From: Wallemia ichthyophaga EXF-994
Taxonomy: Eukaryota; Fungi; Basidiomycota
Reading direction: 5' to 3'
Length of the DNA: 32,000 nt
NCBI RefSeq assembly: GCF_000400465.1
Contig: NW_008806296.1
Coordinates: 60,001-92,000 of the forward strand
Shown here: positions 3,618 to 32,000 of the stretch, piece after piece
Layout of the letters: every line of letters starts with the position of its first letter
Numbering within the stretch: position 1 is the first letter of the stretch
Notes under the pieces: model-generated
What the model was told of the DNA's origin: nothing
Database searches by the model: none
Seen by the model: only the letters and a program-made list of their open reading frames with translations
Position numbers and translations under genes: made by a program

Positions 3618-4591
3618 TTACTCCAGCTTGGCGACCTTTGTATTAACATGAGAAGCGATATCCCATTCAGCCTGCTTCTCAATAACGTTGGCGTCGACAA
3701 GAGTGTTAAGGGTGTTCTCCACAACGCTCTTGCTGACTACGCGGAGGTGATTCTGAGAGTAAGTGACGCCATCCAACCACTTCTGCACGTCATCCTTATC
3801 ATAGCCGAAAGTATCGCGCACATACTGCACAGCGCTACCATCAGATCTACCTTTGTCGAACAGTCTGACAGCGTCGTCTAGGGCGTCAAGGAAGGCAGTT
3901 GCTTGGGTATGATCCACATGTACACCAGCCACAATGCTCCAGCTGGGCCAAGGTGTGAGTTGATTACCGACAAACTTCACCTCGCCGCTCTTAACGTATG
4001 GGAGGGTAGTGAACCACTCCCACATAAAAGCACTAGTAGAGCCATCATTGACACTCCCGCGGAGAGCTTCGAAAGTGCCCTGAATGGCGAAATCAGGTTT
4101 CTCGGACCATTTCTTCTCGAGCGCCATCACATTCGCCATCACTTGGCTCCCAGATCCCGCCCGACTGATGCCGAACGTGGTTCCTTGGAGTTGGGAGAGG
4201 GAGGAGTAAGGCGAGTCAGCGGCAGTGATGACTGCCCAGTTGAGTGGAGATTCTATGTACGTGCCTATCAATTCAAATGTGGTATTACCGCGCACTCGTC
4301 CTGCCAGAAGACTCTCGGTTAACGCTATCGATATGTCGATCTCGCCCGCAGCGAGCTTGCTCATTATTTGGCCTGTGCCGCTCGGACACTCGACCAGAAC
4401 GAACGTTGCACCGCCGTCGCGTTCACCCAGTTGCAGAAGCGGTGATGAAAAGTGCCTGCGATTCACTTGAGTTGATCGCTCACTCGTACTTTCACTTTAC
4501 TCACTCCGGAACATAACCTATCCTCAGTGCTGCAGTAGCTGCTCGTTAGCGCCCCAGTCCTACTCGCACCATTTCACCACCTACGAGCCAT
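3618..4591 (-). CDS. Type-2 periplasmic-binding-fold protein, Ca3427/NMT1-THI5-like (exons 4591-4585, 4538-4505, 4455-3618; ~292 aa)
   Basis: Splicing introns 4539-4584 (GTAGGT...GCTAAC...CAG) and 4456-4504 (GTGAGT...CAG) gives MAPTAALRIGYVPEHFSSPL. The body has CPSGTGQIM, GISRAGSGS and FMWEWFTTLP, recognisable features of this fungal family. Confidence 0.8.
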
Positions 4592-4659
4592 GGTTTGAGA
4601 AGAAGATTGGCCATCTCATATAACTAGAGTATTTCAAGTATTGCGAGTATTTAGTCTAT

Positions 4660-5796
4660 TTACAAAAACCGTCTATATAATTCATCGCATTTGCGAACAG
4701 CACTGCGCGCATATACACTCACATCACCCTCTTGCGCGACGACTGAGGGCTGCGTGACGACATAAGGGTGTCCCCACCTATCGCAACAAGAGGCGTATCT
4801 GGCAGGCTGGGCTTTGATGTGATCGAGATTGAGGAGGACATGTGTAGTGGAGAGGGCGCCCAAGAAAGCCGATATGCAATGGTGGGGGGAACCGCACCAC
4901 CTGGCCATGTAGAAAGCAAGAGCCATAAGCAGATCCAGCAGGACACCTAGATGCTCGTAGAAGATACTCGACCACACGACACCCGGATGCACGATGACTG
5001 AGCGCGTGCTACTGTGACTTGCACGGAGCTCCTCATCGAGTCCGATCGCTAGTGCCTCAGTGAGGTATTTAGATGCTTCGTACGAGTAAGCGTGGCGCTG
5101 CATGTCGAAATCCCCCTCTAAGTCGTAGGCACATTTGCTAGCCTCGAGGCTGGACATCCACAGGATGGACGTAGGCTGAGTGCGCGACTCAGCTTCGAGC
5201 AATGCAGTCAGCTCGCGCGCTATGATAAAGTGCCCGAAGATGTTCATTTGGAACACCCACCCGAGGTTGTCCGACGAGGTCGCGCCGTGCGATTGTAGCT
5301 TGTAGGTGGGGTACGTGACGGCAGCGAGAGGGTGAGATAGCATCTGCACCGTCGCTCCCACCCAGTCTATACCGGAGAAAGTACCCCCGCCGGCGTTGCA
5401 GATTAAAGAGGCTATGGAGGTGTAGTTGGACTTGATACGCTCCGCGAACGCGCGACTAGACTGCACGCTGCTCAGATCGCAGTGTTCGTATTGGAGGGTG
5501 ATGTGTGTGCTGCTGCTCTCAGTTCTGGCGTGTGCGTCAAGATACTCCCGCTGAAGCACCTTTATCGCGCCTTCGGCCCTCAACTGCGACCGGCACGCTA
5601 GGATTAATCGAAGCCCCCTTCTTCTGGCCTGGTGGAGGAATGGGGAGATGCTATCGTCGCTGGTATGATTGCCATCTCCTCCCACATCGGTCGCCCGCTG
5701 GCTGCTCACTTGCGACAGGATCCGCTGGGATATACCAAAACCGACACCGCTATTTGCGCCAGTAACGATGACGTTGACAAGGCTGTCTTTGGGCAT
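4660..5796 (-). CDS. ERG27: 3-keto-sterol reductase (short-chain dehydrogenase), ~378 aa
   Basis: VIVTGANSGVGFGI Rossmann motif, LILACRS, LICNAGG, GWVFQMNIFGHF, LWMSSLEA and YEASK. Start chosen at MPKD (5796) rather than at the ORF-track start 5901. Confidence 0.85.
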   Translation of the reverse strand: MPKDSLVNVIVTGANSGVGFGISQRILSQVSSQRATDVGGDGNHTSDDSISPFLHQARRRGLRLILACRSQLRAEGAIKVLQREYLDAHARTESSSTHITLQYEHCDLSSVQSSRAFAERIKSNYTSIASLICNAGGGTFSGIDWVGATVQMLSHPLAAVTYPTYKLQSHGATSSDNLGWVFQMNIFGHFIIARELTALLEAESRTQPTSILWMSSLEASKCAYDLEGDFDMQRHAYSYEASKYLTEALAIGLDEELRASHSSTRSVIVHPGVVWSSIFYEHLGVLLDLLMALAFYMARWCGSPHHCISAFLGALSTTHVLLNLDHIKAQPARYASCCDRWGHPYVVTQPSVVAQEGDVSVYARSAVRKCDELYRRFL

Positions 5797-5921
5797 GAGA
5801 AGGAGTGTAGAGAAAAGAGAAGATGGACGTTGGGGAGAGAGAGGGAAAATAAATGGCGGATAATAAAAATAAAAAATGACCACACAATGTCTGGCTGACA
5901 CAAGGTAGTGATGCCACCATC
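5797..5921. promoter_or_regulatory. 125-nt divergent interval ERG27/TOA2 (putative bidirectional promoter)
   Basis: Head-to-head ATGs around a purine- and A-rich stretch (gagaaaagagaaga...ataataaaaataaaaaatg). Confidence 0.45.
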
Positions 5922-6468
5922 ATGGCCAACGCACAGAACTACTTTGAACTGTACAGAAGATCGAGGTGCGTTGTTGAGAGTGCTGTGTACGAAACTAACA
6001 ATTCCGTAAGCATCGGAATAGCGCTGACAGACTCGCTGGATGAGCTGATAACGTCTGGACACATAAACCCACAGCTGGCGATGAAGGTTTTGAGTCAGGT
6101 GGGCGTGGAGTGGCGTGTGTTGCGTGGCTGTGGCTAACAGAGCGTTTCTGCAGTTTGATAAGTCGATGATGGATGCTCTATCGAATCAAGTGAAGAACAA
6201 GACGCAGATGAAGGTAAGCGGTGTATTGTCTGATTGGCTGATTGGCTGTTATAAAAGCCCTTCTAACACACCGATACAGGGACACCTCCACACTTACCGC
6301 CTCTGCGATGAAGTTTGGACGTTTATCGTAAAAAATCCTCAAATGAAGGTCGATCAAGGGGAGCTGCTCACTTCCGATAAGATTAAGATCGTCGCTTGTA
6401 GAAACACCGAGGGGAATCCATTCCAGCAGCCTACGAATCAGCCAGCCAATTCAGCTGGCTCAAAGTAA
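5922..6468 (+). CDS. TOA2: Transcription initiation factor TFIIA small (gamma) subunit (exons 5922-5965, 6011-6098, 6154-6213, 6280-6468; 126 aa)
   Basis: The spliced product [41 protein letters not shown]...[19 protein letters not shown]...KIVAC is the TFIIA gamma signature. Introns 5966-6010, 6099-6153 and 6214-6279 are GT-AG, each with a CTAAC branch. Confidence 0.92.
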
Positions 6469-6520
6469 CTAATTTGTATTTTAGTATATGTATTTATATT
6501 TCTTTCTCTTTTAATCTTGA

Positions 6521-6876
6521 TTAGCTTCTTTTTATTCCTTGATTTGCCCTCTTCCTCGATTCCTGATACACCACGTAGCTTGCAAAGATCCCAACCGTGG
6601 ATAAACCCAGCAGCAATAGCCCCGCGGGTATCCTCACTGCCCAATATCTGTCTGGGAAGTATGCCTGTATTGCGCTGTGTGCGGATATAGCTGGCTACAC
6701 GCGAGTTAGCCTATTTGCACACCCATAACACACCACACACAGTCACAAACACCCAAAGCGTGTAGTAGGTGAATATAACGCCACTGCCAATCATCATCAG
6801 CAGTCCGAGTACATTGGTTGGTGTCTGTACGCGGTTTTGTCAATTCAAACTCGTGTCTCAACTGCTAGCTCACCAT
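6521..6876 (-). CDS. DPM2: Dolichol-phosphate mannose synthase regulatory subunit DPM2 (exons 6876-6874, 6824-6741, 6694-6521; 86 aa); not in the ORF track
   Basis: Spliced: MTPTNVLGLLMMIGSGVIFTYYTLWVFVTPAISAHSAIQAYFPDRYWAVRIPAGLLLLGLSTVGIFASYVVYQESRKRANQGIKRS. It has two TM helices and the FTYYTxW / YFP..YWAxxIP pattern of DPM2. Introns 6825-6873 (49 nt) and 6695-6740 (46 nt, GCTAAC branch). Confidence 0.85.
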
Positions 6877-6905
6877 CGTTGTGAGCAAACTAAACAAGAC
6901 ATAAA

Positions 6906-8920
6906 TCACGAGTAATTTACTATTATATACAAAAACAGCGTACTTAGCAACACCAGCACGCTGCTTTTACTCCTCTTCACACTCTCCACATCCACCGCTA
7001 TCAGCAGCGTCACCAACACCTTCCACCAGATATTTCTTTTCTCGGTGATTAAATGCAGCTGTAGCGTGTGTGTTAGCGTGGATAGCGATAATATCCAGAC
7101 AAACCTTCACTAGCACCCCTCCAGCCATATACAACCCCTTCAATGGTATTGCCGGCAGTATTCGCGGTAGTATACGCGGTGGCGGAGGGAGTTTGCGTGT
7201 TTGTTTGGCAGTGTGAGTGTGAGTGTGAGCAGCAGAGTGATTGGAATAAGCAGCGCCATAACCACCCACACCGATACCTTTCTCTATCCACTCCACCTCT
7301 TCCAACACCGCGTGCGCTAGAGGCCTACGCGCCGAATCTCTACTGAGCAGCTTGGCAAGCAGGCGAAAGAGGGAGATGGGGAGGTGAGGGAAAGAGAGAG
7401 ATGCCTGCCTAACATCCTCCTCGCTGAAGCTGTATCATGTGAGCCGCAACCACAACCAAAACCGCACAAACAGCACTCACCCTCTATAATTGGCTATTTC
7501 CGCAGAAAGCACGTCGTAGTCCGTCGCCCCACAGTCACCCACAGTGTGCCAAGGGAGAGCTAGGAAGATCATCTCGTGCATTATCATCCCTAGAGACCAC
7601 ATGTCCTGCGTGAATGAGTGCTGCTGCGTGAGATGACCGTTTGCATCGACGTGCAACGCTTCCGGGGAAGCATACTCCATCGTCCCAGTCTGCCCTGTAC
7701 GTTGGGCCGTTGCTTTGTCGATATCTCCATTACCTCCTCTAACCCCTGCCAGTGACAAGGATGAGCCGAAATCAGAGAGCATTGCGCGAGGAACAGCAGA
7801 AGGATTGCTGCTATCACCAACATCATCCCAACTTAGCAGCACATTCGCCGGCTTGAGATCGAGGTGCATAATTCCTTTGCTGTGCAGGAAGTCGAGACCA
7901 TCAGTGATGTGTTTGAGCAGTTGGAGGAGCTCTTCTTTGCGGAGGTGTTGATGTGTTGGGGTGGGGGCGGGGGTATCAGTGTTATTGTTGGTGTGAGTAT
8001 CTGTTGAGTGCGCCGAGTGAATTGAGTTCTGCCTCTTCTGTCTCCGTTGCTTGCGTGTCTCGGCAATAAAATTTTCATTTGTGTATGAGCGTGACTGTGA
8101 ATGTGAGTTGGAGGGCAAATGTGCTTTATCCACACCCTCCGCATTCCCACCACGGCGCTCATATATCAGCTCAGCCAGACTCCCGCCATTCGCAAAAGAC
8201 ATGAGGAGGTAGAGAGTTGGAACGCGAGGGCCAAACTGGGTGAGCGTCGCCAACTCGACCCATGAATGGTGGTAGTCGACAATATGCGGGTGGCGCAGAC
8301 TCTCGAGCAGCTTTACCTCCTGCAGTGCCCTGGTGAGGTACGCAGAGGACAGCCCGACAGCCACCTTCTTCACTGCATATAGACCCAGTGCGTTATCGTT
8401 CAGCGTGTGCTGACAGAGATGTACACTGGCATATGCACCACGACCTATTTGCCGCAATTCGACGAAGAATTTCGCATAATAGCCGTCGACGCGTGATGTG
8501 ACGTCATGTGCGTGCGAGTGGTAAGAGTGAGTGGGATTACGAGGGGAATCTGCTTTAGCTGGCTGAACATCTGCTATCGAATTACGCTTCTGATATGGTG
8601 GTTTCTGGTATGTTTTCGTATAAGGAGGTGTACGCGCACCTTCAAGCTCACTAAGCAAGCGGAAGTAGTTGGTGGTAGGTGGAATATCATCGGCAGGATC
8701 TGGCTGCATCGGGCGTAGACAATTGGGGCAGATTGAGTCGTGTTGGGTTTGTGGGTTGAGTGATTGAGTAACTTTAAGTGATTTCGTGGGTGGATGGTAG
8801 AGTACTATCTGATTAGAGGTGTTTGATCTGCCATAAAGTAATTTAATATGATTCAGCCAATGTAATAATCCCTCACAACACCAATTGCCAGTCTTTGTCG
8901 TGGGCTTTGACCAATGCCAT
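6906..8920 (-). CDS. IKS1: IKS1-family Ser/Thr protein kinase with predicted C-terminal membrane segments (exons 8920-8877, 8827-7481, 7429-7105, 7058-6906; ~622 aa)
   Basis: N-terminus WQLVLSNTSNQIVLYHP...CPNCLRP and YYAKFFVELRQIGRGAYASVHLCQH...YAVKKVAVG are typical of IKS1. Kinase motifs HLDLKPAN, DFG, GTMEYASPE and DMWSLG are present. Introns 8828-8876, 7430-7480 and 7059-7104 all join in frame. Confidence 0.82.
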
Positions 8921-11964: not shown

Positions 11965-12960
11965 TTATGCAGATTTAAACAACACTTCACTCTTACCGAG
12001 TGGAGCGGATTTATACGCACCATTTTCAAAGAGGGTGGAGCTAGGCAGTGATACTTCTGGACGTACGTGGAGATAAAGCTGGTGCAGTGCGTTAGTAGCA
12101 GCGCGATATTTAGCCATTTTGAGCGAAGATCCGAATCCTTCACCGAGTTGGATATTATCGTCAGCGAATACGCCGACAATGTAAACGGGCGACTGCGTAT
12201 ATCTTCCTGTCTCCTTGAGCAACTTCACATCTACTCCGCTGTAGCCAAACTTGGTGGCAGTCTGGTTGATTATGGTTACTGGGTTTTCAAACTTGAGGAG
12301 TGAGCGAAGGTCGAGGGAGCGGGAAAGGAAGAAAGCTTTGGCGAAGTGAGAGGCTTTCTCTACACCTCCATGCTTGAGTACCAAACCAACGACACTCTTG
12401 CTCAGACTAGCCATGGCGTCTTCGTGGAGAGTAAGGCCGTGGGTTGATTCGCGTCTCCATCTCAGCGACGAGTGCGCACCCCACTCCCGACTAACAGCAG
12501 AGCAAGTCTTGGGACCAACAAGCATGCTGACAGCTGCTTTGAGCGGCTTGAGTGGTAGATTTGGGTAGGTGAGGTGGAGGTGTTCAGTTGCAACGAGTCC
12601 AAGGAATGTGTTGCCGATGGATTGTAATTCGTCGTTGTTGGATGACTCGCTGAATGACGCATGAGTGCACGCCTTCTCTATTTCGTCAATTTCGACACTC
12701 AGTCCGAGTCTGTGTCCCAGAGCCACGAGAGAAGATTCACGCACGGGCACCGACGAAGCCCATTCCTTTGCGTTAAATGGTGGCAGTGAAGAAGATTCCT
12801 GTGTGATATTCTCTGTGATATTCTCTGCGCTATTCACGCTACGCTTCCCTTTGGCTTCGACTGGCGGCGCTCTAACTGCAATTCTACTACTGCTACTGCA
12901 TACAGACGTCGATAAACTGCGCAGATTCACCGCTCTCACTGCTTGCCGAGTTGCCATCAT
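11965..12960 (-). CDS. MRPL3: Mitochondrial large-subunit ribosomal protein mL44 (yeast MRPL3), RNase III-like domain plus dsRBD, 331 aa
   Basis: Arg/Ser-rich presequence-like N-terminus; degenerate RNase III signature NDELQSIGNTFLG; PNLPLKPLKAAVS; C-terminal dsRBD LLKETGRYTQSPVYIVGVF...LGEGFGSSLKMAKYRAA. Confidence 0.85.
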   Translation of the reverse strand: MMATRQAVRAVNLRSLSTSVCSSSSRIAVRAPPVEAKGKRSVNSAENITENITQESSSLPPFNAKEWASSVPVRESSLVALGHRLGLSVEIDEIEKACTHASFSESSNNDELQSIGNTFLGLVATEHLHLTYPNLPLKPLKAAVSMLVGPKTCSAVSREWGAHSSLRWRRESTHGLTLHEDAMASLSKSVVGLVLKHGGVEKASHFAKAFFLSRSLDLRSLLKFENPVTIINQTATKFGYSGVDVKLLKETGRYTQSPVYIVGVFADDNIQLGEGFGSSLKMAKYRAATNALHQLYLHVRPEVSLPSSTLFENGAYKSAPLGKSEVLFKSA

Positions 12961-13047: not shown

Positions 13048-15575
13048 TCAATTTGAAGCCTTACGCTCCCCACTTGAATCCCTGCTCTGTGGTCCTAGCC
13101 CCAGTCCGGCAATCACAGACGGGGCAGACGACAGCGTCGGCGACCTTACATGCCGCGTGCGGCGGTGAGTATTGTTGTTCGTTTGATTAGTATTGTTGGT
13201 ACCACTAGCGCCTGTCTGATGTCCTCCTGACAACACCGAATTACCACCTAGATATGGAGTATTTGGCTGCGACTGTGTCCATGCATTCGACAACGACGCT
13301 GGAAACAAATTGATTGAAGGCGCCACTGGGGAGCGCATCGGTGGTGACTTACTCCCATCCCTTCGAACAAATGTAACATCTTCATCACTCGACTCTTCTT
13401 CGCGATTCTGATTCATCAAAAATGCTTCCCTCTTCTCTCCTTCCAGCCTCTCAACTGTAGCTCTCAAATTGAGCACCTCTTCGGGCAAATCTGTATTCTG
13501 GAGTGGATGGACATGTACTTCTTTAACTTGCGGTGTTTCCCTCACTTGACTGCGGTTTCTACTCTCAAGTAGCTCCGTCAACCTGCTCTCCAGATGCTCG
13601 TTCTTAAAACGCAGCTGATCGCTCTCATTGCGCGACTTACGAGCCTCGTTCTCTGCCGCGACTCGTGCATCTCGCTCTGCTTTTGTCATTGTCTTGAGCA
13701 CATTAAACCTACCTAAGAGTAGCTGCATTTCGCGTCTTTGCTCGTCGTGTCTAAATAGATCATCGTCTCTGTCGGGTTATGTTAGCACATGCACATTTCC
13801 CTCACAACGCCAACCCACCGATCTGCCAAAAGATTCATCAACTCCTTGTTGCGCTCTTGTAACTTGCCAAACTCCTCAATTTTAGGTGTCCACTCTCTGA
13901 TCTGATTCTCAAGCTCGAATATTTGATTACCTGAATCAGCCAGTCTTCCTAGATTAACACGAATAATCTCTTCACTTGCACTACGTTCGCCTCTTAATCC
14001 AACAGCTTCTGCATCCCAGTTCTTCTTCTCTTCTCGGAAATACTTTACTTTCTTCTGTAGCTCGTCCGTCCATGTAACATGACGTGAGTGAGTTTTAGTT
14101 GCTTCGCTTCGAGCGTTAGACAGAGCAGCCTGTGCTTGTGACAACCTGGAGCTGAGTTCGCGGAGATGTATGTACAAAGACTGTTGGGCATCTTCATCGC
14201 GTGCTTCTGCCAATCTACGTCTATGTAACTGACCCAATCTCATCAACAGTTGTCCTTTAATATACTGCTCGTACGTGTAGTCACGCTTGATGTCATCTGT
14301 TCCAAACATCTCCCTCTCATCACCTTCTTCATCTTCCTTTTTCTCCACTCTCGCACGGTGGATGCTCTCACGCAAAGCTTTCGATTCAGGTAGGTAGATA
14401 ACCGATTGATCGATCTGCGAGTCTAGTTGGGAAAGATCTGCATTTTCTTGATTGAGGTGGGTGTTTCCATCGATTATAATTCCCTCAGCTACACGTCTTC
14501 CATATTCAACAATACTTGCTGCGTTGATCTCAAGCACTGCGCACTGTGCAAGAATAGCTTGTGATTCAGTGTCAGGCCATCTGCAGCTTGTCTGTGTGAG
14601 CTCATAGTGAGGATCATTGAGAGGGTGTTTGAGGAAGAATGGATGTATGAGATGAGTTCGTAGTAATGGAAGCGAGCGAGCCTTGATGAGATCTACAAAC
14701 AACCACTGATCAATATCTTGAACGTAAGGGTTGTCGAATTCAAAAGAATTGAGGTATTCAATCGGAGACCGTAAGAATGCGAGAGTGTTGGCTGGAAAAA
14801 TACCATAAATGAAGGTAAACAGAGGTGAAGGGGAAGGAGTGAATTTGCTATCTTGAGTGAGTTGAATGAAATCTTTATTCTTGAGAGTGAGTGTACGTGT
14901 CACTGCCAGTTTATCAATCTCATTTATGATTTCAGAGTGAATGAATGCATTTTTACGCCTTTTCCAAACCAGAATTCTACCGATGAATGCGAGGAATGTT
15001 GGTATATACTTTGATAGCAAGATTGGGAATTTTGGAAGTAAGATGGAGTAAATGCAGCTAATGAGACTGATGACGCTGCTATCGTTATCAGTCAAGCTGC
15101 TTAGTATGATGAGTTGAAACAGATCAGAGGATATAAGATGATGTGAGTGAATCGACTGCTGACTGACTAGACTGAAAATTAGTTGCAAAGTTTGTAAACG
15201 ATATGATTCAGACTTGAAGTGAGTAATTAGGATGTTGTAGATAGTTGAGGCATGACTAGGAAGTACTTCAATGAGAAAATGTTTACTGTCATTGCTAATT
15301 GAGCTCTGGTTGAGATATTCACGTATAAGAAGAGAAGCAGTGTGTGTATCTAAGTGCTTTATAAGGAGCTTTCTCACGAGCTCATTGCGAAGATAGTGAA
15401 TAAAGTAATTCTCTATAAAAAAGTGCAAATTGCTTGAAATATCCAAGTCTAGCAAGCAATTGACTGTATATTCAGTCAAAGGGAGATTCCTAGGCTTGAA
15501 ATCATCTAAATTGAAATGTTTATAATATTTCTTATCAAATTCTTTATGTTTTATTGAATAAACGAGTTCATCCAT
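13048..15575 (-). CDS. TSC1: Hamartin / TSC1 homologue (exons 15575-13819, 13768-13048; ~825 aa)
   Basis: N-terminal helical domain with FIGRILVW and LFTFIYGIFPANTLAFLRSP (hamartin-typical), a long C-terminal coiled coil and a Ser/Pro tail. A 50-nt intron 13769-13818 (GTGGGT...GCTAAC...CAG) joins the two ORF-track pieces in frame. Confidence 0.8.
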
Positions 15576-15578
15576 GGG

Positions 15579-16171
15579 TTATTCTGTGGTGTTGGTGGTG
15601 GTGGTGTTCGTAGGCTGATCCTCAAGCTCAAACTGAAGCCTGGGTAATATTTTTGTTTTGAATATCTTACCAGCAGCGTCTTGACCAAATTCATGTGATA
15701 TTGCTCCAATCAGCGCTTCCACTGTCGATCCTCTAACCTTGAAAATACCGTTCTCTTGACTTGTTGAGAATCTCATCACCTTCTCTAATCCCCAATCCCT
15801 GCCAATAGAATCCCCAAGGCTAGGCGTATCTAAGCACCTAAACTTGTGATTCCTCACGCTCTTCCCGCTTTCCATTAAGTGCATTAACAGCTGAAAGCGC
15901 AGTGTTCTTCTCCCTAAGAAACTAAGCCTCGATTGATGATCCCCGGAAACTCCAGCTATTGACTTGTGTGTTACCGCCCTTAACGCTGTATCCTCACGCA
16001 TTTCACCGGGCAAAGAAGGAAATTGCTCTTTCATGTATTCCTTCAATAATGGTGTATTCAAGCGCGATGAATTAGCTTCAGTGGCTATGAAATCTTAGTT
16101 TTGATATAAGCCATATGCTACACTCAAAACTCACCTAATCGCCTACTCTGGGTCACCGCTGCTCGATACAT
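15579..16171 (-). CDS. MRPL15: Mitochondrial large-subunit ribosomal protein mL57 (yeast MRPL15), RNase III-like (exons 16171-16135, 16084-15579; 180 aa)
   Basis: Presequence-like MYRAAVTQSRRLA; AVTHKS...QSRLSFLGRRTL and GSTVEALIGAISHEFG are degenerate RNase III-fold motifs. Intron 16085-16134 (GTGAGT...ACTAA...TAG). Confidence 0.75.
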
Positions 16172-16337
16172 CCTCAACGTTAGTTACCAAGAGAGAAGAC
16201 TCAGTGAAACAAAGAGAAATGTATAAAACAACGATAAATATGTATAAAAGGTATAATCATCGTATTTACATTATCAAATGACACAATCAAAATCAAGAAA
16301 TGTACTAGTGAAAATTACTTCCGTCAGCTAAAGTCAA

Positions 16338-18754: not shown

Positions 18755-20630
18755 TCAGAAATACTGATGCCTATCATGCTTTGGTGAGATGGTTGAATTA
18801 GGTGTAAGCGTTAGCGGTGAATGTGAATGAAAGTGTGATTGCTTGTGTCCAGATGTTGATGAGTCACTTCCACCGAGAATTGGTAGTGCGCTCAAAGGTC
18901 TCTTGCGTCGTGATTTTTTCTTATTTGTACTACCTGTACTCGATGGTAGTGGTAAACTCATCTGATTAGGTTTCGGATGCTTCAACTCCGGTACCTTATT
19001 CTGGTTGATCGAAGCTCTGTAGACGTATATAGATCCACTATCACTTCCACCGACAACAATCACCTCATGCTCCTGGCGTAGTATTGCTGTACATTTAATA
19101 AGTTCGGGTGTTTGCCATAGGTCATAACCGGGGATGTTGATGCTGTTATCATCTGCTCTGGCATTGATCGCACATTGCGTAGGCCATACGTAGAGATGCT
19201 TGTCTTCACTGCCAGAGCTGATCCAGCTACCATCGCTGCTGGGTGTGATACCCATCTGCATCGATCTGTTTTTATTACCTTGGTGGTGTGAGACTGTGTA
19301 AATCAAGAATACCCCACAAACCTTTAAACTTCGCGACTACTTTCTTGCTATCAAGGTTAACCATGTATGCTCTGTTATCGGCGTTTGTAACTAAGACGAA
19401 ATCATCGTGGACATATGGAATTGCTTCAATTCCTACTATCTTTTTGCTGGAGTTTATCCTCTTTGAGTTGTGATTCTCAGCGTTGTGAATGTGTGTCTGG
19501 TTTGTGTAATTGTAAAGCTTAATGGTAGCTACATGCTTCATCCCCTTATTAGAGTAGGTGAATATGTCAAGCTGACCGAGGAGGGTGCCAACCAAGATGT
19601 AGTTACCCGTCTTGCTAAATGCGCAAGCTGTGATGAGCTCATTGAGTCTGTGTGAGAAAATGGCAGATTTGAGTGGAATTGACCATAGTTTGATTGTAGC
19701 ATCTAAACTAGACGAGATAAAATATCTGTCGTCCTTAGGATGAAATTTGGTAGATGTGACAATATCGTTGTGCCTAAAAGTGGACAAACAGCCAGATCTA
19801 TTTGGATGCCAAAGTCTAACAGTCTTATCTAGACTTGCGGTGATGAAAAAATTGTTCTTGCTCCAGTCCAAACCAGATACGCCGGAGTGATGATCGCTAA
19901 ACTCTTTCACATCAATATCGTCGAAAGAAGTCTTATCGTGTTTGAGATTGTGAATTCTGACCAAACCGTTAAAGTTAGCCGAGGCAAGGTAGTTACCATC
20001 GTGACTAAATTTCATGTCGTAAACAGCGTCTTCATCGTCGTAGCTGGCGGATCTTTGAGGAGCGTTCTCTGTAGAAGGAGATCTAGTTGGAGAATAAGGT
20101 CTAGAAGATTTGTGAATTTTTGCACGTTCGGCTAATGAGGAAGGAAGAACGGATAAATTAGACATAGGAGGATAAAGAACTTGTTGTAAGTGTAGTCTAT
20201 GAAATTGTTTTGTAGGTTGCCGATGAGAATGTATCCGGATATGTTGGGGGATGCCATCAAAAGATAAGCGACGATGAGGATGGTAGGAGCGGCATTTGCC
20301 CTTATTCTTGAATAGCTTGCCTATAAGATTATTGCGCTGGCTATTAGAGCGATTTGGATGTGTGATCTTGGTCGGCGGGCGATGATGGGGGGGTTGAGGA
20401 GATTGAAGTGTGTAATCGCTGTAATCGCTGCTGTTGCTATCGGAGGTGTCTGTGGGTTGCTGCTGTGAGTAATTGTCTTGAGAATCTTGAGAATCTGGAG
20501 GCTTTAGTGGCTGTTCTTGGTGGGTGTAGGCGGTGGTGTTGGTGATGCTGTCACTGCCACTACCACTACCACTACCACTACCACTGCCACTCTGCGTATC
20601 CCAGCCTAGCCAATTGAATAAGAAATTCAT
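18755..20630 (-). CDS. WD40-repeat protein, WDR44/YMR102C-DGR2-like (exons 20630-19322, 19278-18755; ~610 aa)
   Basis: WD repeats DMKFSHDGNYLASA, LDWSKNNFFITASLDKTVRLWH, HNDIVTSTKFHPKDDRYFISSSLDATIKLWSI and SSDGSWISSGSEDKHLYVW. A 43-nt intron 19279-19321 joins KFKG to NKNRS. Confidence 0.8.
20551..20592. repeat. Coding hexanucleotide microsatellite (CCACTR)n encoding a Ser-Gly run in the WD40 protein N-terminus
   Basis: tcactg ccacta ccacta ccacta ccacta ccactg ccactc, translated on the minus strand as SGSGSGSGSGSGSD. Confidence 0.9.
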
Positions 20631-20802
20631 TACATAAAAGAAATGAAAATTATCTCTTGGTGGTTGATTTATAACAATTCTCGTTGATAATCCCTAATCT
20701 CTGTCTAACACTTGACTAAGCCGGTGGGCTTTAGAAGACCGGTGAAATTTTAATTTTGTATCAAGTGCCCTAGGTTGCAATTTTAATAGTCCCTCTATTG
20801 AA
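20631..20802. promoter_or_regulatory. 172-nt AT-rich divergent interval WD40/DSS1 (putative bidirectional promoter)
   Basis: Head-to-head ATGs; AT-rich sequence with two CCGGTG copies at 20721 and 20739. Confidence 0.45.
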
Positions 20803-23632: not shown

Positions 23633-23728
23633 GTGGCTCGTTGAGTGTGAGGTGTGTTGCTGACTGGAGCATATCAAAGGTAATTTATTTATTTAGACTG
23701 TTTCTACTCTATACACATACATATTATA

Positions 23729-25312
23729 TTACACATCACTGCTTTGGTTTTGACTTTTAGTTTTGCTCTTCTTTTTGTTATTCTTGTTTTTGTTCTTGCG
23801 TTTCTTTGCTGGGGCAGCTGCTGCTACTCTGGCTCCTTCTGCAGTATCCACTCTCTCGAAACAAGCCACAAAGAATCCATTGGTGCGGTCGGTTCCAGGA
23901 GAACAGCGAATGACGCTCTGCGCCAAACCGACATCACCACCAAACGGCTCAGAGTGACCGCGCGTAGGCCATTCCGGCAGACACGAGTCTCTGCTCGCAA
24001 GTCTAAAATCGGGATGCTGGATGAGCGAATTCATAACCACGCACTCATTCTCCTCCTCGTGCACTGAGCAGGTAGAGTATACGATGCGGCGTACATTTGG
24101 AACTAAAGTGGCGTGATATGTTGGTTGGTTGATACGCAATACGCACACTACCCACATTTCATCGCATGTCCTATGATAGTCTCCTGGAAAGCCGCCAAGG
24201 CACTGAGACGGTCATCGTGCGCCTCTCTGTCGTCGTTATCTGGTGTGTGTGTGAACATCAAGGCTATAAACCTTCCACGCCGCCAACGCACCTTGTTCAG
24301 TGAGGTAATCGAGTCTGTTGACAATCCCAGAGCCCGTACAGCTCGGGTCGAGGAGGATGTGTGTGACGTCGGCGTGTGCAAATGGATCGCAATGGGTGAA
24401 ATCACCCAGGACGTTTTGGGTGTTAGCGCAACCAGCCACACTGACCATCTTTTCGAGCGTCGCAAATCGTTTTGGCATGTGCTCGTAAGCGAGTAGCTTG
24501 CCTTTGTTGTGCATGAGCGACGACAGCAGCGTAGTCTTGTTGCCGGGTGCCGCCGTCGCATCGATGACCGTGCCCATGTTGTGACTCTGACTGTCCAATT
24601 CACTCGCCAGCCTCTTGCCATATGTTTTGAGCTCATTCAGCAGCACTACCGGTGGCATGCAGCTCGCTAGATCTTGCAGTATTACCTCCCCGCTGTTGTA
24701 CATGTCGCTCGACGTTATGCGTTGCGATAGCCTTACATGCACTGCTATCAGGCTCGGTATATGTTCCACTACCCTGTATGCGTCACTCGCTAGTGGCTGC
24801 TCATTGCTCGTCTTATCCTCGCGCAAACCCAGCAGCTGAGCCAGCTTGGTGACGCCATCGATAAATGCTATTTTGTTTGTGTTGATGCGCAGGTATCTCG
24901 GAATAAGTTCTCCTTCAGATTCAGCCTTCCTACCCAAATCACTATTCGTCGTCACACCAGCCTTGACTCTCAACTTGGTGAGTTCCCCCCTTAATCTCGT
25001 TTTGTGGCGCAGAATTGCATCTTTGATCGGCCCTGAGCCAGCTTCAATCGCCTGCCGCTTTGAGAATAGCAGGTCGTGTAGAAGAACCATGACAAGATAA
25101 ATAGGATCGCCTTGTGGCTTGGCAATCTTAATCGCCTTCTTCTCTTTATCTAGCAACCCAGTCACTCCAACCAGCTGCTTTATCACATCCTGGTACTTGA
25201 GCGTCTCCAGTACAAGAGCGAGCAGTCGCTTGGAATGGGCGTACGATTTAACCGACGTCTGCTTGTTAAGCACCCTCTCAACTGCCTCCGACGCCTGACG
25301 ATAGAATTCCAT
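23729..25312 (-). CDS. RCM1: 25S rRNA cytosine-C5 methyltransferase RCM1/NSUN5 (exons 25312-24292, 24239-24156, 24102-23729; ~492 aa)
   Basis: IPRYLRINT, LQDLASCMPP, DATAAPGNKT, LLDPSCTGSG (motif IV Cys) and IVYSTCSVHEEENE (motif VI Cys); Lys-rich tail. Introns 24240-24291 and 24103-24155. Confidence 0.88.
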
Positions 25313-28019: not shown

Positions 28020-28100
28020 TTCAATCTCAGCGTATGAGTATTAAGTGGTTGCAGTCCAAGATATTTGTGAAAAAATAAATATATCTCTATTTTTTATATT

Positions 28101-31100
28101 CTAATGTCCACTTCTTCCAATAGCCCGTGCTTCGTCTACTCTCGGTAACTTGTACTCCCCTTCCCCAGTTGGTGCTCCCAGGAACTCCGCTTTGACCAAC
28201 CACGCGACGTATAATCCCAACAAAGGCATATCAACCGTCGTCTTGACCTTCTCATCCGCCTTGGACTTCTTGATCAACTCTTGTGCATTCTTGTCATCCA
28301 GCGATGCACTCTTGGTCGACGTAGGCAGGTCATCCAAAACAAAGTGCAGCAATGGGAACAATGCGTTATCTCCAACTTCCATTACGTGCTTCTCCAGCTC
28401 TGACCTCCACACAAGATAGTCACTCGTCTGAACTTGATATCCGTATTTCTCCAGACATCCTAATAAGTCTGAGTAACGCACAGGTGGTCGAGCTGTTACG
28501 TGGACAACTCCATTACTATTTCCGTCTTCAACCCTACTCAGCATAGACAGTGTTGTAAGTCTGGCGACGTGATCAACGGGTACCATGTTAACAAAGTTGT
28601 GGATATTTGGCACTTGTCCGAGTTGTACGCATCCCTTGACTAACCTCCACAGAAAGTCATCCGTGTTTGTCACTTTTGCCTCATTAGATTGTTTTCATTA
28701 GTAGATCACCTCACCTACCTGCTGACTCTGAATCTCCAACAACGTACCCCGGTCTAACTATCGTACAGGCCAAGCCTCGCTTCGTGGCCTCCATCAAAAG
28801 CTTCTCGGCGACCCACTTGCTCTGTCCGTAACCAGTGCCAAGTCCCTCGCGAGCGCCTTCAAGATCATCTGACTCGAGCACACCTGAAGATTGACCGGAC
28901 AGTGTCAATTCATCAGAAAGCTTGATGTAATGTTCAGTATCGAGTGCGGAAGTTGAAGACACAAATGACAACGCCTTAGCCTTCTGGTTGGCTGCCAGTT
29001 CAATAGCAGTCATTGTAGAGAGAACGTTAGCCGAACGAAGCTTGCCGTACGAGTAAACCCAGTGCACAAATGCACCATTGTGAATTATGGCGTCAGAGTC
29101 ACTCGAAAGCCTATTCCACTCCTTTTCGTCTAATCCAAAATGCTTAGATTCAAGATCACCAACTACTGCCTCAACTCTGCCCTGCTTGACCCACGTCTCA
29201 TCCCATGAATGACGCGCTGATCCACCCTGTCTGAGTCTGTTGATACCGTCCTCGTTCGATTTAGCACGAACAACACAGATTACTTTATCCACTCTGTCTC
29301 CACGCAACTTGAGCAGATCACGCAGAACAAAAGCACCAAGGAAACCAGTGGCACCAGTCAAAACCACAGTAAGCTTCTTGTTGTTCAAGTCTGATGGTAG
29401 TGCTGGGTACTTGTCAGCCAATCGAGGTATGAGAGAATCGAAATCGTTTCCGTAATGAACCTCATCCGACGCTGCTTTGTCATCCTTCTTCACACCGACA
29501 ACGTCAGCATGCAGTCCGAGATCGGCTGCCTTCATTCCTTCAATTGAGTAGGCCAATCCTTCAATAGTTGGCTGCTCGAACACCAATCCGAGCGGTGCTT
29601 CAACGACGAGAGCTTTTCTTATCTCGAAAATCAATCGAGTCGCCAAAATGGAGTGACCACCTAAATCGAAAAAGTTGTCATCTAAAGCGATAGATGATGG
29701 TGCTGAAGGAAGAAGATTCTTCCAGACATCGTGGATAGTTTGTTGAATTGGAGTAAGCTTACGGTCGTCACCCACGTTTGTACGCGGCGTAAGAATAGCC
29801 GTATCTGGGAATGGCAGAGCTGGCTTGTCGATCTTACCATTTGGATTGAGTGGCATGCGCGTGAGTGGGATGAAAACTGAAAAATCTAGTCAGCATCATT
29901 CAAATAAAATACTAAGACTCACTAGATGGGATCGAATACGTTGGTAGCTTGGTTTTGAGATGCTCGCGCATGTTCTTGATAAGCTTACGGTAACGCTTCA
30001 GTCCTCTAGCAATCTCCCTTGAACGATCATCCTGAACGTCGTGACCTTCATCTTCGTCGTTACTCATGTATCCTTCAAGCTCGCTTGTTTCATTTGGAAC
30101 AAAGTACGACACAAGAACCTTTTCCTCGTCCTTGTCACGTCTGACGAGAGTAACATTGTTTCTTACCAATGGATGAGCTGAAAGGTGAGTATCGATCTCA
30201 CCCAACTCAATTCTAAATCCACGGATCTTGATTTGGTCATCTGCTCTACCAGTACACTCTACCAACCCATCTGGGCCATATCTACCTAAATCGCCAGTTC
30301 TGTACATTCTGTCACGAATACCTTTCCAATATTTACTGTAGTCTGGTTTCGTTTCGGCTATGGTATCTCTCCTTTCAACGCCAAAGCCAAACCAATTCTC
30401 GGTGAATTTCTCCTTAGTAGCATTTGGATCTAAATAACCCTCTGACAGACCACCTGAACGGACGTAAATCTCGCCGACTTCACCAACACCACATAGGACG
30501 TTCTTGTCCTGGCGATTAACAACAAGTAACTGCACGTCAATCATTCCCTGACCAGCTGGCATTATATCTTTTTGTCTACCGAGGAAAGAAGAATTAGCGT
30601 TAACTGAAGGGATAGAGTAGTATGATACTGCTCTTTGGGTCTCAGTTGTACCGTACATGTTATTTATTTGAACGTTATGAGCTAAAGCTTGCAAACGAGT
30701 ACAGTCACGTTTAGTGAGGACATCACCAACAAAGAAGGCATTCTTGAGAGACGGTATGTGTCTAACGGCCTGAGCTGACAGTAACTGACCCATCGCTGGT
30801 GTCAAGTGTGTGACTGTGACTTGGGAATCCGCCATCCACTCAGCAAGCTGACCTGGTGTGCCAATATCTTCAGACGTTGGAACGTGCAACTCAGCACCGA
30901 GGAAAAGAGGTGTGAAGATATCTCTTTGGATAGGGTCGTGTGCGATACCACTAAGCATAGTGAACTTTTCATCCTTTGTCAAATTGAAACGCTCAGACAT
31001 CCAAGGGAAAAAGTGGGTGAGTGAGTAGTGACGACCCATCACACCCTTTGGAATACCAGTTGAGCCAGAAGTGAAAGAAAGAGTGCCGATTGAATCAGGA

Positions 31101-32000
31101 CCCAGTATAACACCTGGATGTTGAACAGATTTTGGTGATGGGTTTGCGAGTATGTCTTGTTGGCCATCGAGAGAGCCGCCTCTTAATCCATCTTTGGTGA
31201 GGCGCAAAGCAGGAACTTGGACGCACAAGTCTAGCTCCTGATTGATGTAGTCTTTGACTTCTGCCGACAGAACTCCGGCTCTGTCGAGCACCACCAAACC
31301 ACGAGGACGCGCGACTTGCAAGTAGATATTTTGACGAGAAGGAGGGTAGGCGGGGTCTGTTGAGTATCGAGGTTAGTTAATGTAAATGAAATGAAATATT
31401 ATCGCCTACCAATAACAGAGAAGGTAGCTCCAGCTTTGAGAACACCCATGACAGCAACGACCAAGTCAACACCTCTGTAGGCGTAAACCATAACGACCTC
31501 CTCTCTTTGTATACCACCATTCAAAAGATGGTGAGCGAGTATATTAGATGCGCCGTCGATTTCCTTATACGACCACGTTTGTTTGTTGCCTTGGTCAGTG
31601 CTCTCAACGATGCAAGTGCGAGTTGGATCGATATGAGCATTTTTTGAGAATATGTCGGTGATGGCACCCTTATAGCCACACCAGTCGAGGTCAGCGCGAG
31701 GATCAGGTAAAATACCAGCCTGAGACTCGGTGAAGAGAGGAAAAGAGCCAATGTTTGAAATGTTGGCAGTGTTATTCCTGAGGAGGTTGAATTGCATGAT
31801 AAGGCTCTTTATTCTCTGGTTTGAGAAGAGGAGTGCGTTGTAGACAACGGCGATAGATTTCTCAACCTGATCGTAGTAAACAGCCAAATCGGAAGCTAAT
31901 GCCGATTGAGTGCGCTCGTTGGGGGTGGTTGAGAGAGAGACTCTAAAGATGGTGCTATCGTTTGAATGGCTTGCCTTGAGAATCTCAGACCTAAGCTGAT
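28101..32000 (-). CDS. LYS2: L-2-aminoadipate reductase (A-T-R NRPS-like enzyme of lysine biosynthesis), 5' end beyond the window
   Basis: A-domain motifs TLSFTSGSTGIPKGV, YGTTE, YRTGDLGR and [38 protein letters not shown]; reductase VLTGATGFLG and GYGQSKWVAE. Introns 31358-31409, 29877-29922 and 28673-28718. The frame is open to 32000. Confidence 0.93.

Follow-up and report, generated by a model that had tools for sequence, protein, structure and literature searches.

How are two neighbouring genes expressed when the start codon of the second lies only three nucleotides past the stop codon of the first? This question is raised by a locus of the basidiomycete fungus Wallemia ichthyophaga EXF-994, which we analysed within a window of 32,000 nucleotides (NCBI RefSeq assembly GCF_000400465.1, contig NW_008806296.1, positions 60,001 to 92,000 of the forward strand; all coordinates below are those of the window). 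On the minus strand of this window a gene assigned by homology to the mitoribosomal protein mL57 is followed by a gene assigned to TSC1, the hamartin homologue. The closeness of the two genes is real, reproducible and evolutionarily stable; the features that would make the junction resemble a device, namely the in-frame spacing of 3 nt and an AATAAA hexamer, are not conserved. The junction looks like the extreme end of a general crowding of genes in Wallemia, which is a known kind of compaction, and we consider it moderately likely that the two genes, which are separate, each have an mRNA of their own and that these independent mRNAs physically overlap.

Read along the minus strand, the junction is ACA GAA TAA CCC ATG GAT GAA. 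The mL57 stop TAA occupies 15581-15579, the spacer CCC occupies 15576-15578, and the TSC1 start ATG occupies 15575-15573 in the same frame as the mL57 stop. An earlier sequence-only reading of the locus had given the stop and start these positions and this common frame, and had stated that TSC1 has no other in-frame methionine for about 400 codons; re-reading of the sequence gave the same coordinates and frame, and the next in-frame methionine is codon 423. Both the junction and its spacer are identical in a second, independent W. ichthyophaga assembly (L006), and hence the junction is no assembly error. Furthermore, the NCBI annotation of Wallemia mellicola places both genes 6 nt apart, so that an artefact of assembly or annotation was rejected. 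The N-terminal sequence MDEL is common to five TSC1 proteins of the Wallemia lineage and similarity ceases directly upstream of it, which supports ATG 15575 as the TSC1 start. The shared frame of the two genes would arise by chance in one case out of three and is not conserved.

The upstream gene has two exons on the minus strand. Exon 1 (16135-16171, with its ATG at 16171) comprises 37 nt, ends in phase 1 and, as read from the sequence and its splicing, encodes MYRAAVTQSRRL. It is followed by an intron of 50 nt (16085-16134, GTGAGT...CATAG), the removal of which restores the frame of a 160-codon open reading frame (ORF) at 16061-15579. Exon 2 (15579-16084), supported by Pfam and PDB matches, carries an RNase III-like domain that ends in ...KILPRL (15636) and includes the stop TAA. 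The 37-nt exon 1, its phase and its splice sites, including the GT donor, are kept in two relatives (L002 and L007). The peptide that exon 1 encodes (MYRAAVTQSRRLA) is rich in arginine, has no acidic residue and is conserved in the same two relatives; to judge from this composition, the N-terminus of mL57 looks like a mitochondrial presequence. The spliced gene encodes 180 residues. Its ORF matches the Pfam family Ribonucleas_3_3 (PF14622) with 64.4 bits (cut-off 35), and in the PDB it comes closest to chain 9 of N. crassa 6YWE (4.5e-7) and to yeast mL57, 5MRC chain 9 (7e-4). The RNase III-like domain is thus closest to the mL57 chains of fungal mitoribosomes, and these matches support the name mL57 that the gene had been given from the sequence alone.

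Beyond the conserved domain the protein has a C-terminal tail of 18 residues (15582-15635, minus strand; QFELEDQPTNTTTTNTTE), which is threonine-rich and non-conserved when compared with N. crassa and with the Wallemia relatives. The N. crassa mL57 terminates 2 residues past the KIL.RL motif, and past the corresponding KILP(K/R)L the tail amounts to 3 residues in W. mellicola, 10 in L007 and 18 in both W. ichthyophaga and L002. These two 18-residue tails are both rich in threonine and serine but different in sequence. From the conserved end of mL57 to the TSC1 ATG there are 60 nt in W. ichthyophaga, and 18-62 nt across the lineages. The W. ichthyophaga tail therefore has the appearance of former spacer DNA that would be translated until the first stop is reached. 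An intron-like element in the same 3′ end of mL57 (15670-15584, minus strand, 87 nt), with a GTAAGA donor at 15670, a TACGAAC branch-like site and a CAG acceptor, was rejected as a chance occurrence; its splicing would reach the same TAA but remove the conserved KILPRL helix, and neither L001 nor L002 has the donor. A caution on annotation also attaches to this gene. One search with the mL57 protein of the window returned only ORFs from Logan and ENA and no W. ichthyophaga protein from NCBI or UniRef; mL57 may be missing from the public protein sets of this species, or may have been dropped by the word filter of the search. The annotated mL57 of W. mellicola, with 132 residues, is shorter than the 165-codon ORF of its second exon and may be mis-spliced.

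The downstream gene also has two exons on the minus strand. Exon 1 (13819-15575), supported by the profile described below and by a 99% match to an NCBI protein, begins with the ATG at 15575; the 50-nt intron (13769-13818, GTGGGT..TGCTAAC..CAG) is supported by alignment of the spliced product to the protein P0001 across the junction; and exon 2 (13048-13768), established by splicing and protein alignment, ends with the stop TGA at 13050-13048. The spliced product, 825 residues long, shows 99% identity to the W. ichthyophaga ‘Tuberous sclerosis 1 protein-like’ entry of NCBI, which has 824 residues and begins MDEL. A profile of five Wallemia TSC1 proteins matched the N-terminal domain of Chaetomium thermophilum TSC1 (7A0N/7A0M, 1e-16 and 3e-16), S. 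pombe Tsc1 (4KK0/4KK1) at 9e-10 and human hamartin at 0.03. Taken by itself, the Pfam family Hamartin scored 18 bits, under its cut-off of 25.9. Residues ~430-640 look coiled-coil-like to the eye; a coiled coil in the C-terminal part is the TSC2-binding region of hamartins. A search with the five-protein profile recovered no TSC1 from outside Wallemia, and no exact match for the 597-residue ORF of the gene is on record. Based on homology to the N-terminal (HEAT-like) domain, the downstream gene is assigned to TSC1/hamartin, and the profile matches to structures of that domain bear out the name proposed for it earlier.

Orthologous loci could be obtained for five further lineages. Every Wallemia locus that is long enough (L001, L002, L005, L006 and L019) has the genes in the order PAK-mL57-TSC1-mL44, and a gap of 12 nt or less between mL57 and TSC1 is common to four lineages. 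Its length, its frame, the stop codon and the sequence all vary. W. ichthyophaga has GAA TAA CCC ATG, whose 3-nt spacer keeps the frame. L002, the TSC1 of which is 87% identical, has GAC TGA ATTTG ATG, where the spacer is 5 nt and out of frame, and W. mellicola and L005 have TAC or TTC TAA GTCGAT ATG (6 nt). The junction of L007/L008 reads TCA TAA AACTAGAAATTC ATG, with a spacer of 12 nt that is in frame and has an in-frame TAG inside. Finally, in L003/L004, whose TSC1 is 52% identical, a TGA is followed by an AT-rich spacer of 166 nt. Variation in the spacer (3, 5, 6 and 12 nt), the stop (TAA or TGA) and the mL57 tail, together with 166 nt in a distant relative, is what would be expected from drift under compaction and not from a sequence-specific device. 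The sequence-only reading had proposed an alignment of sister loci as a check on the junction; in this comparison the 3-nt in-frame spacer is not conserved, and the AATAAA hexamer is kept in the closest clade only. As judged by this comparison, the 3-nt in-frame spacing of W. ichthyophaga is incidental.

The same comparison bears on the idea that ribosomes occasionally read through the mL57 stop and produce an mL57-Pro-TSC1 fusion with a mitochondrial presequence, which was one of three routes to TSC1 offered earlier. The two ORFs do share a frame in the window, W. mellicola and L007, but a common frame in three of four junction types is not significant (p ~0.11). The spacer of L002 puts TSC1 out of frame and that of L007 contains the in-frame TAG, which together contradict readthrough as a conserved mechanism. 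In addition, UAA CCC AUG is no known readthrough context and no structure follows it. We find such a fusion scarcely credible.

The closeness itself has a more general setting. The W. ichthyophaga genome has 9.6 Mb and 514 genes per Mb, and coding sequence (CDS) accounts for almost three quarters of it (PMC3849046). Elsewhere in the window the gaps between tandem CDSs are 87 nt (TSC1 to mL44), ~101 nt (Pbp1-like to NSUN5), 166 nt (PAK to mL57) and, in another pair, ~418 nt, and the 3 nt between mL57 and TSC1 fall far under all of these. In the NCBI annotation of W. mellicola the tandem gaps around the locus are 126, 369, 134, 6 and 99 nt and the convergent gaps are 63, 45 and 35 nt. A divergent pair in W. 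mellicola, formed by a DEAH helicase gene and its neighbour, has 42 nt between the two start codons (L019 21822-21865), so that there too promoters must overlap coding sequence. In Cryptococcus, the one basidiomycete with mapped transcript ends that our search of the literature turned up, the median leader is 105 nt and the median 3′ untranslated region (UTR) is 127 nt (PMC7049704); on such lengths the Wallemia gaps leave little space for separate leaders, 3′UTRs and promoters, unless the UTRs of Wallemia are much shorter. Hence a lack of space for terminators and promoters is the rule for many Wallemia gene pairs, and mL57-TSC1 is the extreme case. The sequence-only reading had argued that the junction leaves no room for a separate terminator and promoter. 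That argument is sound, but the genus-wide compaction of which the junction is the extreme end had been overlooked.

If no spacer is available, the 3′ end of the mL57 mRNA might be sought within TSC1, and the base composition points in this direction. An AT-rich patch (15467-15593, minus strand; at most 80% AT in 80 nt) extends from the mL57 stop over approximately the first 36 codons of TSC1. The first 80 nt of TSC1 are 80% AT, which is the 99.97th percentile of the 80-nt windows in the 32 kb. Seven patches with at least 74% AT in 80 nt occur in the window, and the one at the TSC1 start is the only one inside a CDS. The six others (149-241, 6444-6556, 16194-16322, 20610-20698, 23671-23764 and 28033-28116) are without exception found at gene ends, in five cases immediately past a stop codon. 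Across the window, the 100 nt past stop codons average 64% AT (standard deviation 6, n = 15) versus 52% for the last 100 nt of CDSs, and the contrast between 3′ flanks and CDS ends is alike in W. mellicola; AT-rich 3′ flanks thus seem to be a regular feature of the W. ichthyophaga genome. The 100 nt past the mL57 stop are 72% AT and are coding, as TSC1 codons 1-32. GC content at third codon positions is 0.19 in TSC1 codons 2-28, 0.41 in the remainder of TSC1 exon 1 and 0.37-0.56 at the starts of five other genes. Among relatives, the patch reaches the 98th percentile or above in the four whose junctions are tight, and it is at the median in the one with the 166-nt spacer. We infer that the patch may be a 3′ flank that also encodes protein, and of the data at hand this gives the best indication of an mL57 mRNA end within it.

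Within the patch lies the AATAAA hexamer (15550-15555, minus strand), in TSC1 codons 7-9 and 24 nt past the mL57 stop. Its position had been given correctly by the sequence-only reading, but the proposal that it acts as a poly(A) signal loses its force. The hexamer follows from the codons S-I-K-H and is present only in the W. ichthyophaga clade (L002 and L007), where it is shared because these codons are shared; it is absent at this place in W. mellicola, L005 and L003. Twenty-six copies of AATAAA occur in the window, and ~0.5 copies are expected in 80 nt of a patch that is 80% AT, by an estimate from base composition. Moreover, the poly(A) sites of Cryptococcus associate with ATGHAH and not with AAUAAA (PMC7049704). 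A copy of ATGHAH (ATGAAC, provided by the codons M-D-E-L) stands 8 nt past the mL57 stop.

Gene models, conservation and base composition are observed; from them we infer where the transcripts would end. Transcription of TSC1 would start within mL57, probably in the last 40-120 nt of its CDS, and give a short leader free of AUG. The mL57 mRNA would be cleaved and polyadenylated within the AT-rich first ~100 nt of the TSC1 CDS. Poly(A) sites close to a promoter are weakly used. A polymerase that comes from the mL57 promoter, ~600 nt upstream, could accordingly be competent to terminate at the TSC1 start while one that has newly started on TSC1 would not. The last AUG before the TSC1 AUG is 119 nt away in the window and 103, 71 or 42 nt away in relatives, which makes a short AUG-free leader starting in mL57 feasible.

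Several observations weigh against these overlapping transcripts or take strength from the evidence for them. With 7 AUGs in 546 nt, stretches of 42-119 nt that lack an AUG carry no significance. For the most part, the AT-richness of the TSC1 start is imposed by the peptide, which is rich in K, N, D, F, Y and I and occurs in the relative with the 166-nt spacer as well. Identical synonymous codons are in raw excess in the first 30 codons of TSC1 (for example 18 of 22 versus 49%), but the excess is weak when only two-fold codons are counted (p = 0.04, 0.11, 0.38 and 0.24); in the 3′ part of mL57 there is no clear synonymous constraint. The motif ATGHAH, itself taken from Cryptococcus, is only weakly enriched past stop codons (11 in 2400 nt versus 6.2 expected), and neither promoters nor poly(A) sites are reliably predictable for the Wallemia lineage. 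A search for transcripts in relatives gave 18 of 18 contigs that retain their introns and run colinear with genomic DNA throughout. The locus contigs from Logan and ENA (L005 and L009-L018) are colinear with the W. mellicola genome without intron-sized gaps, which indicates that they are derived from DNA. A scan of Joint Genome Institute (JGI) metagenomes for the W. mellicola junction gave no match.

Arrangements of this kind have precedents. In the compact microsporidia Encephalitozoon cuniculi and Antonospora locustae, as in Wallemia, spacers are very short, and the functions of promoters and terminators are pushed into neighbouring genes, as they would be at mL57-TSC1; transcripts there extend into adjacent genes, and apparently a single ORF is translated (PMC2742732). 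The window has the short spacers typical of overlapping units in compact genomes (3, 87, ~101 and 166 nt). Unlike the microsporidia, Wallemia is a free-living basidiomycete that has introns and a genome of 9.6 Mb, the overlap of its transcripts is deduced from sequence, and a 3-nt spacer is extreme even for its own genome. For Agaricomycetes, Gordon et al. (2015, PMC4503453) report that the genes of polycistronic reads have independent transcripts as well and that the downstream gene may suffer interference from read-through. These fungi belong to the same phylum and share with Wallemia tandem same-strand genes in conserved order, although that study concerns a class other than Wallemiomycetes and does not show translation of the downstream ORF. 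A third parallel is provided by intragenic 3′ ends. The yeast genes CBP1 and RNA14 have alternative poly(A) sites inside their coding regions. As proposed for mL57-TSC1, a 3′-end region then lies within a CDS and full-length and truncated RNAs could compete; unlike in CBP1 and RNA14, the putative signals here would belong to the upstream gene and stand no more than ~100 nt past the start of the downstream one. If mL57 and TSC1 do form two overlapping mRNAs, one stretch of DNA serves both as TSC1 coding sequence and as the 3′-end region of mL57, and the locus is a natural test case for RNA polymerase II promoters and terminators at a gap of 3 nt, between unrelated nuclear genes of a free-living fungus.

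Overlap could carry regulation as an addition. TSC1 transcripts might be cut at the 3′ signals of mL57 in a regulated switch of premature polyadenylation, or a TSC1 promoter within mL57 might be occluded by mL57 transcription, and in either case the output of TSC1 would run inverse to the activity of the mitoribosomal gene. With such a geometry some interference can hardly be avoided, the AT-rich patch at 0-100 nt into TSC1 resembles a 3′ flank, and the interference considered possible in Agaricomycetes (PMC4503453) agrees with it. Against this, the crowding affects many unrelated gene pairs, so that a logic specific to TSC1 is unneeded, there is no evidence of regulation, and the AATAAA is not conserved. 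An improbable add-on is how we would rate it. The sequence-only reading had listed a promoter inside mL57, with 3′ signals inside TSC1, as its second route; this geometry comes near to the overlapping mRNAs that we favour, but nothing shows the regulated switch that was attached to it.

The stop and start lie 3 nt apart here and 5, 6 and 12 nt apart in relatives, and this closeness in four lineages is an argument for a bicistronic mRNA of mL57 and TSC1. After termination at the mL57 UAA, ribosomes would then reinitiate 3 nt further on, which would tie TSC1 synthesis to mL57 translation. As in the calicivirus termination upstream ribosomal binding site (TURBS) and in the UAAUG of hypovirus CHV1, the next start follows within a few nucleotides of a long upstream ORF. 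In a filamentous fungus, reinitiation at the CHV1 UAAUG reaches 2.5-4.4% and tolerates 1-10 inserted nt and a change from UAA to UGA (PMC2699510), a tolerance with which spacers of 3-12 nt are compatible. Furthermore, basidiomycetes do have read-through polycistronic RNAs (PMC4503453), and we assume that TSC1 is probably required at a low level only. Were the bicistron real, it would be a rare cellular case of viral-type termination-reinitiation, in a nutrient-signalling gene.

The remaining evidence is less favourable to it. The upstream ORF is long, with 180 codons. Ordinary reinitiation declines after short ORFs, and the known cases with long ORFs require an upstream element. UGGGA, the 18S-complementary TURBS motif 1, is missing from the last 150 nt of mL57 in the window and in L001, L002 and L005; the motif (TGGGA) occurs only in L007, at -122. 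Hence no conserved TURBS enhancer was found, in a scan that covered UGGGA and not complementarity to other parts of the Wallemia 18S rRNA. The sequence before the mL57 stop is the least conserved part of mL57, and the fold of 15660-15496 is no better than that of shuffled sequences (z = -0.83). A search of the window for Rfam families and tRNAs found none. A patch with the composition of a 3′ flank directly past the mL57 stop makes little sense for an obligate bicistron. Unlike the viral examples, mL57-TSC1 is a cellular gene pair, described here from its genes alone, and its junction varies by species and has no upstream enhancer that we could find. Leaky scanning through mL57 to TSC1 was likewise considered and is excluded by the 7 AUGs in the preceding 546 nt. 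Termination-reinitiation, the first route of the sequence-only reading, is therefore conceivable but draws no support from an enhancer motif, a conserved junction or RNA structure, and has a 180-codon ORF ahead of it; we hold it to be unlikely.

A further way to make TSC1 from the mL57 promoter, or from one upstream of it, would be a long 5′ intron that removes most of mL57. For example, the donor of mL57 exon 1 could be joined to an AG 6-14 nt before the TSC1 ATG, which would leave an upstream ORF of 13 codons ending 3 nt before the AUG. Every species has an AG at this distance from the ATG, but by our estimate chance would place one within 14 nt in ~57% of cases. In the window, splicing from the exon 1 donor to ACAG|AA preserves the mL57 frame and ends at the same TAA, but the equivalent in W. 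mellicola gives an in-frame fusion, so that the outcome is not conserved. There is no conserved branch point or pyrimidine tract, and the intron would need ~550 nt versus the 50 nt of local introns. This route we regard as very unlikely.

With the routes weighed in this way, overlapping independent mRNAs remain the reading that we prefer, and the wider meaning of the junction can be considered. It had been suggested that any of the three routes could couple TORC1 control to mitoribosome synthesis; this is speculation that finds no support past the adjacency of the genes. In its strongest form, the level of TSC1, the brake on TORC1, would be hard-wired to mL57 expression, either because TSC1 is translated by reinitiation only or because, with its promoter and first codons within the mL57 transcription unit, it is throttled by mL57 transcription or 3′-end formation, and the tight gap and the flanking by mL57 and mL44 would be selected and not by-products. 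We think it improbable that this is so.

The gene for mL44 (11965-12960, minus strand), identified by Pfam and PDB matches, starts 87 nt past the TSC1 stop and forms a second tight tandem junction. It has the Pfam domains RNase III, dsrm and MRPL44, and it matches 6YWE chain 5 at 4.8e-29 as well as yeast and human mL44. Hence both genes for RNase III-fold proteins of the large mitoribosomal subunit flank TSC1 on the same strand (16171-11965), mL57 upstream and mL44 downstream. In the yeast mitoribosome structure mL57 and mL44 pair with each other. A recent duplication that gave rise to mL57 and mL44 was rejected (BLASTP E = 0.41).

On the other side of mL57, six independent Logan assemblies (L005, L010, L011, L013, L014 and L018) break near L001 ~2965-2975, within the 3′ portion of the gene for the PAK kinase, and the shared break suggests a stretch that is repeated, polymorphic or hard to assemble. 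In W. mellicola, a model of 841 residues (L019 15426-19582) combines kinase, short-chain dehydrogenase and PBP2_Ca3427-like domains, and a TFIIA-gamma gene is nested within it on the opposite strand (L019 16990-17429). In the window (~3618-8709) the same three domains lie in separate minus-strand ORFs (7477-8709, 4660-5901 and 3618-4466), and the 841-residue model is probably a fusion error. Finally, the AMP-binding, PP-binding and NAD_binding_4 ORFs at 28101-31887 on the minus strand form one gene for a Lys2-type alpha-aminoadipate reductase, and the gaps of 55 and 77 nt within it are introns and not intergenic spacers.

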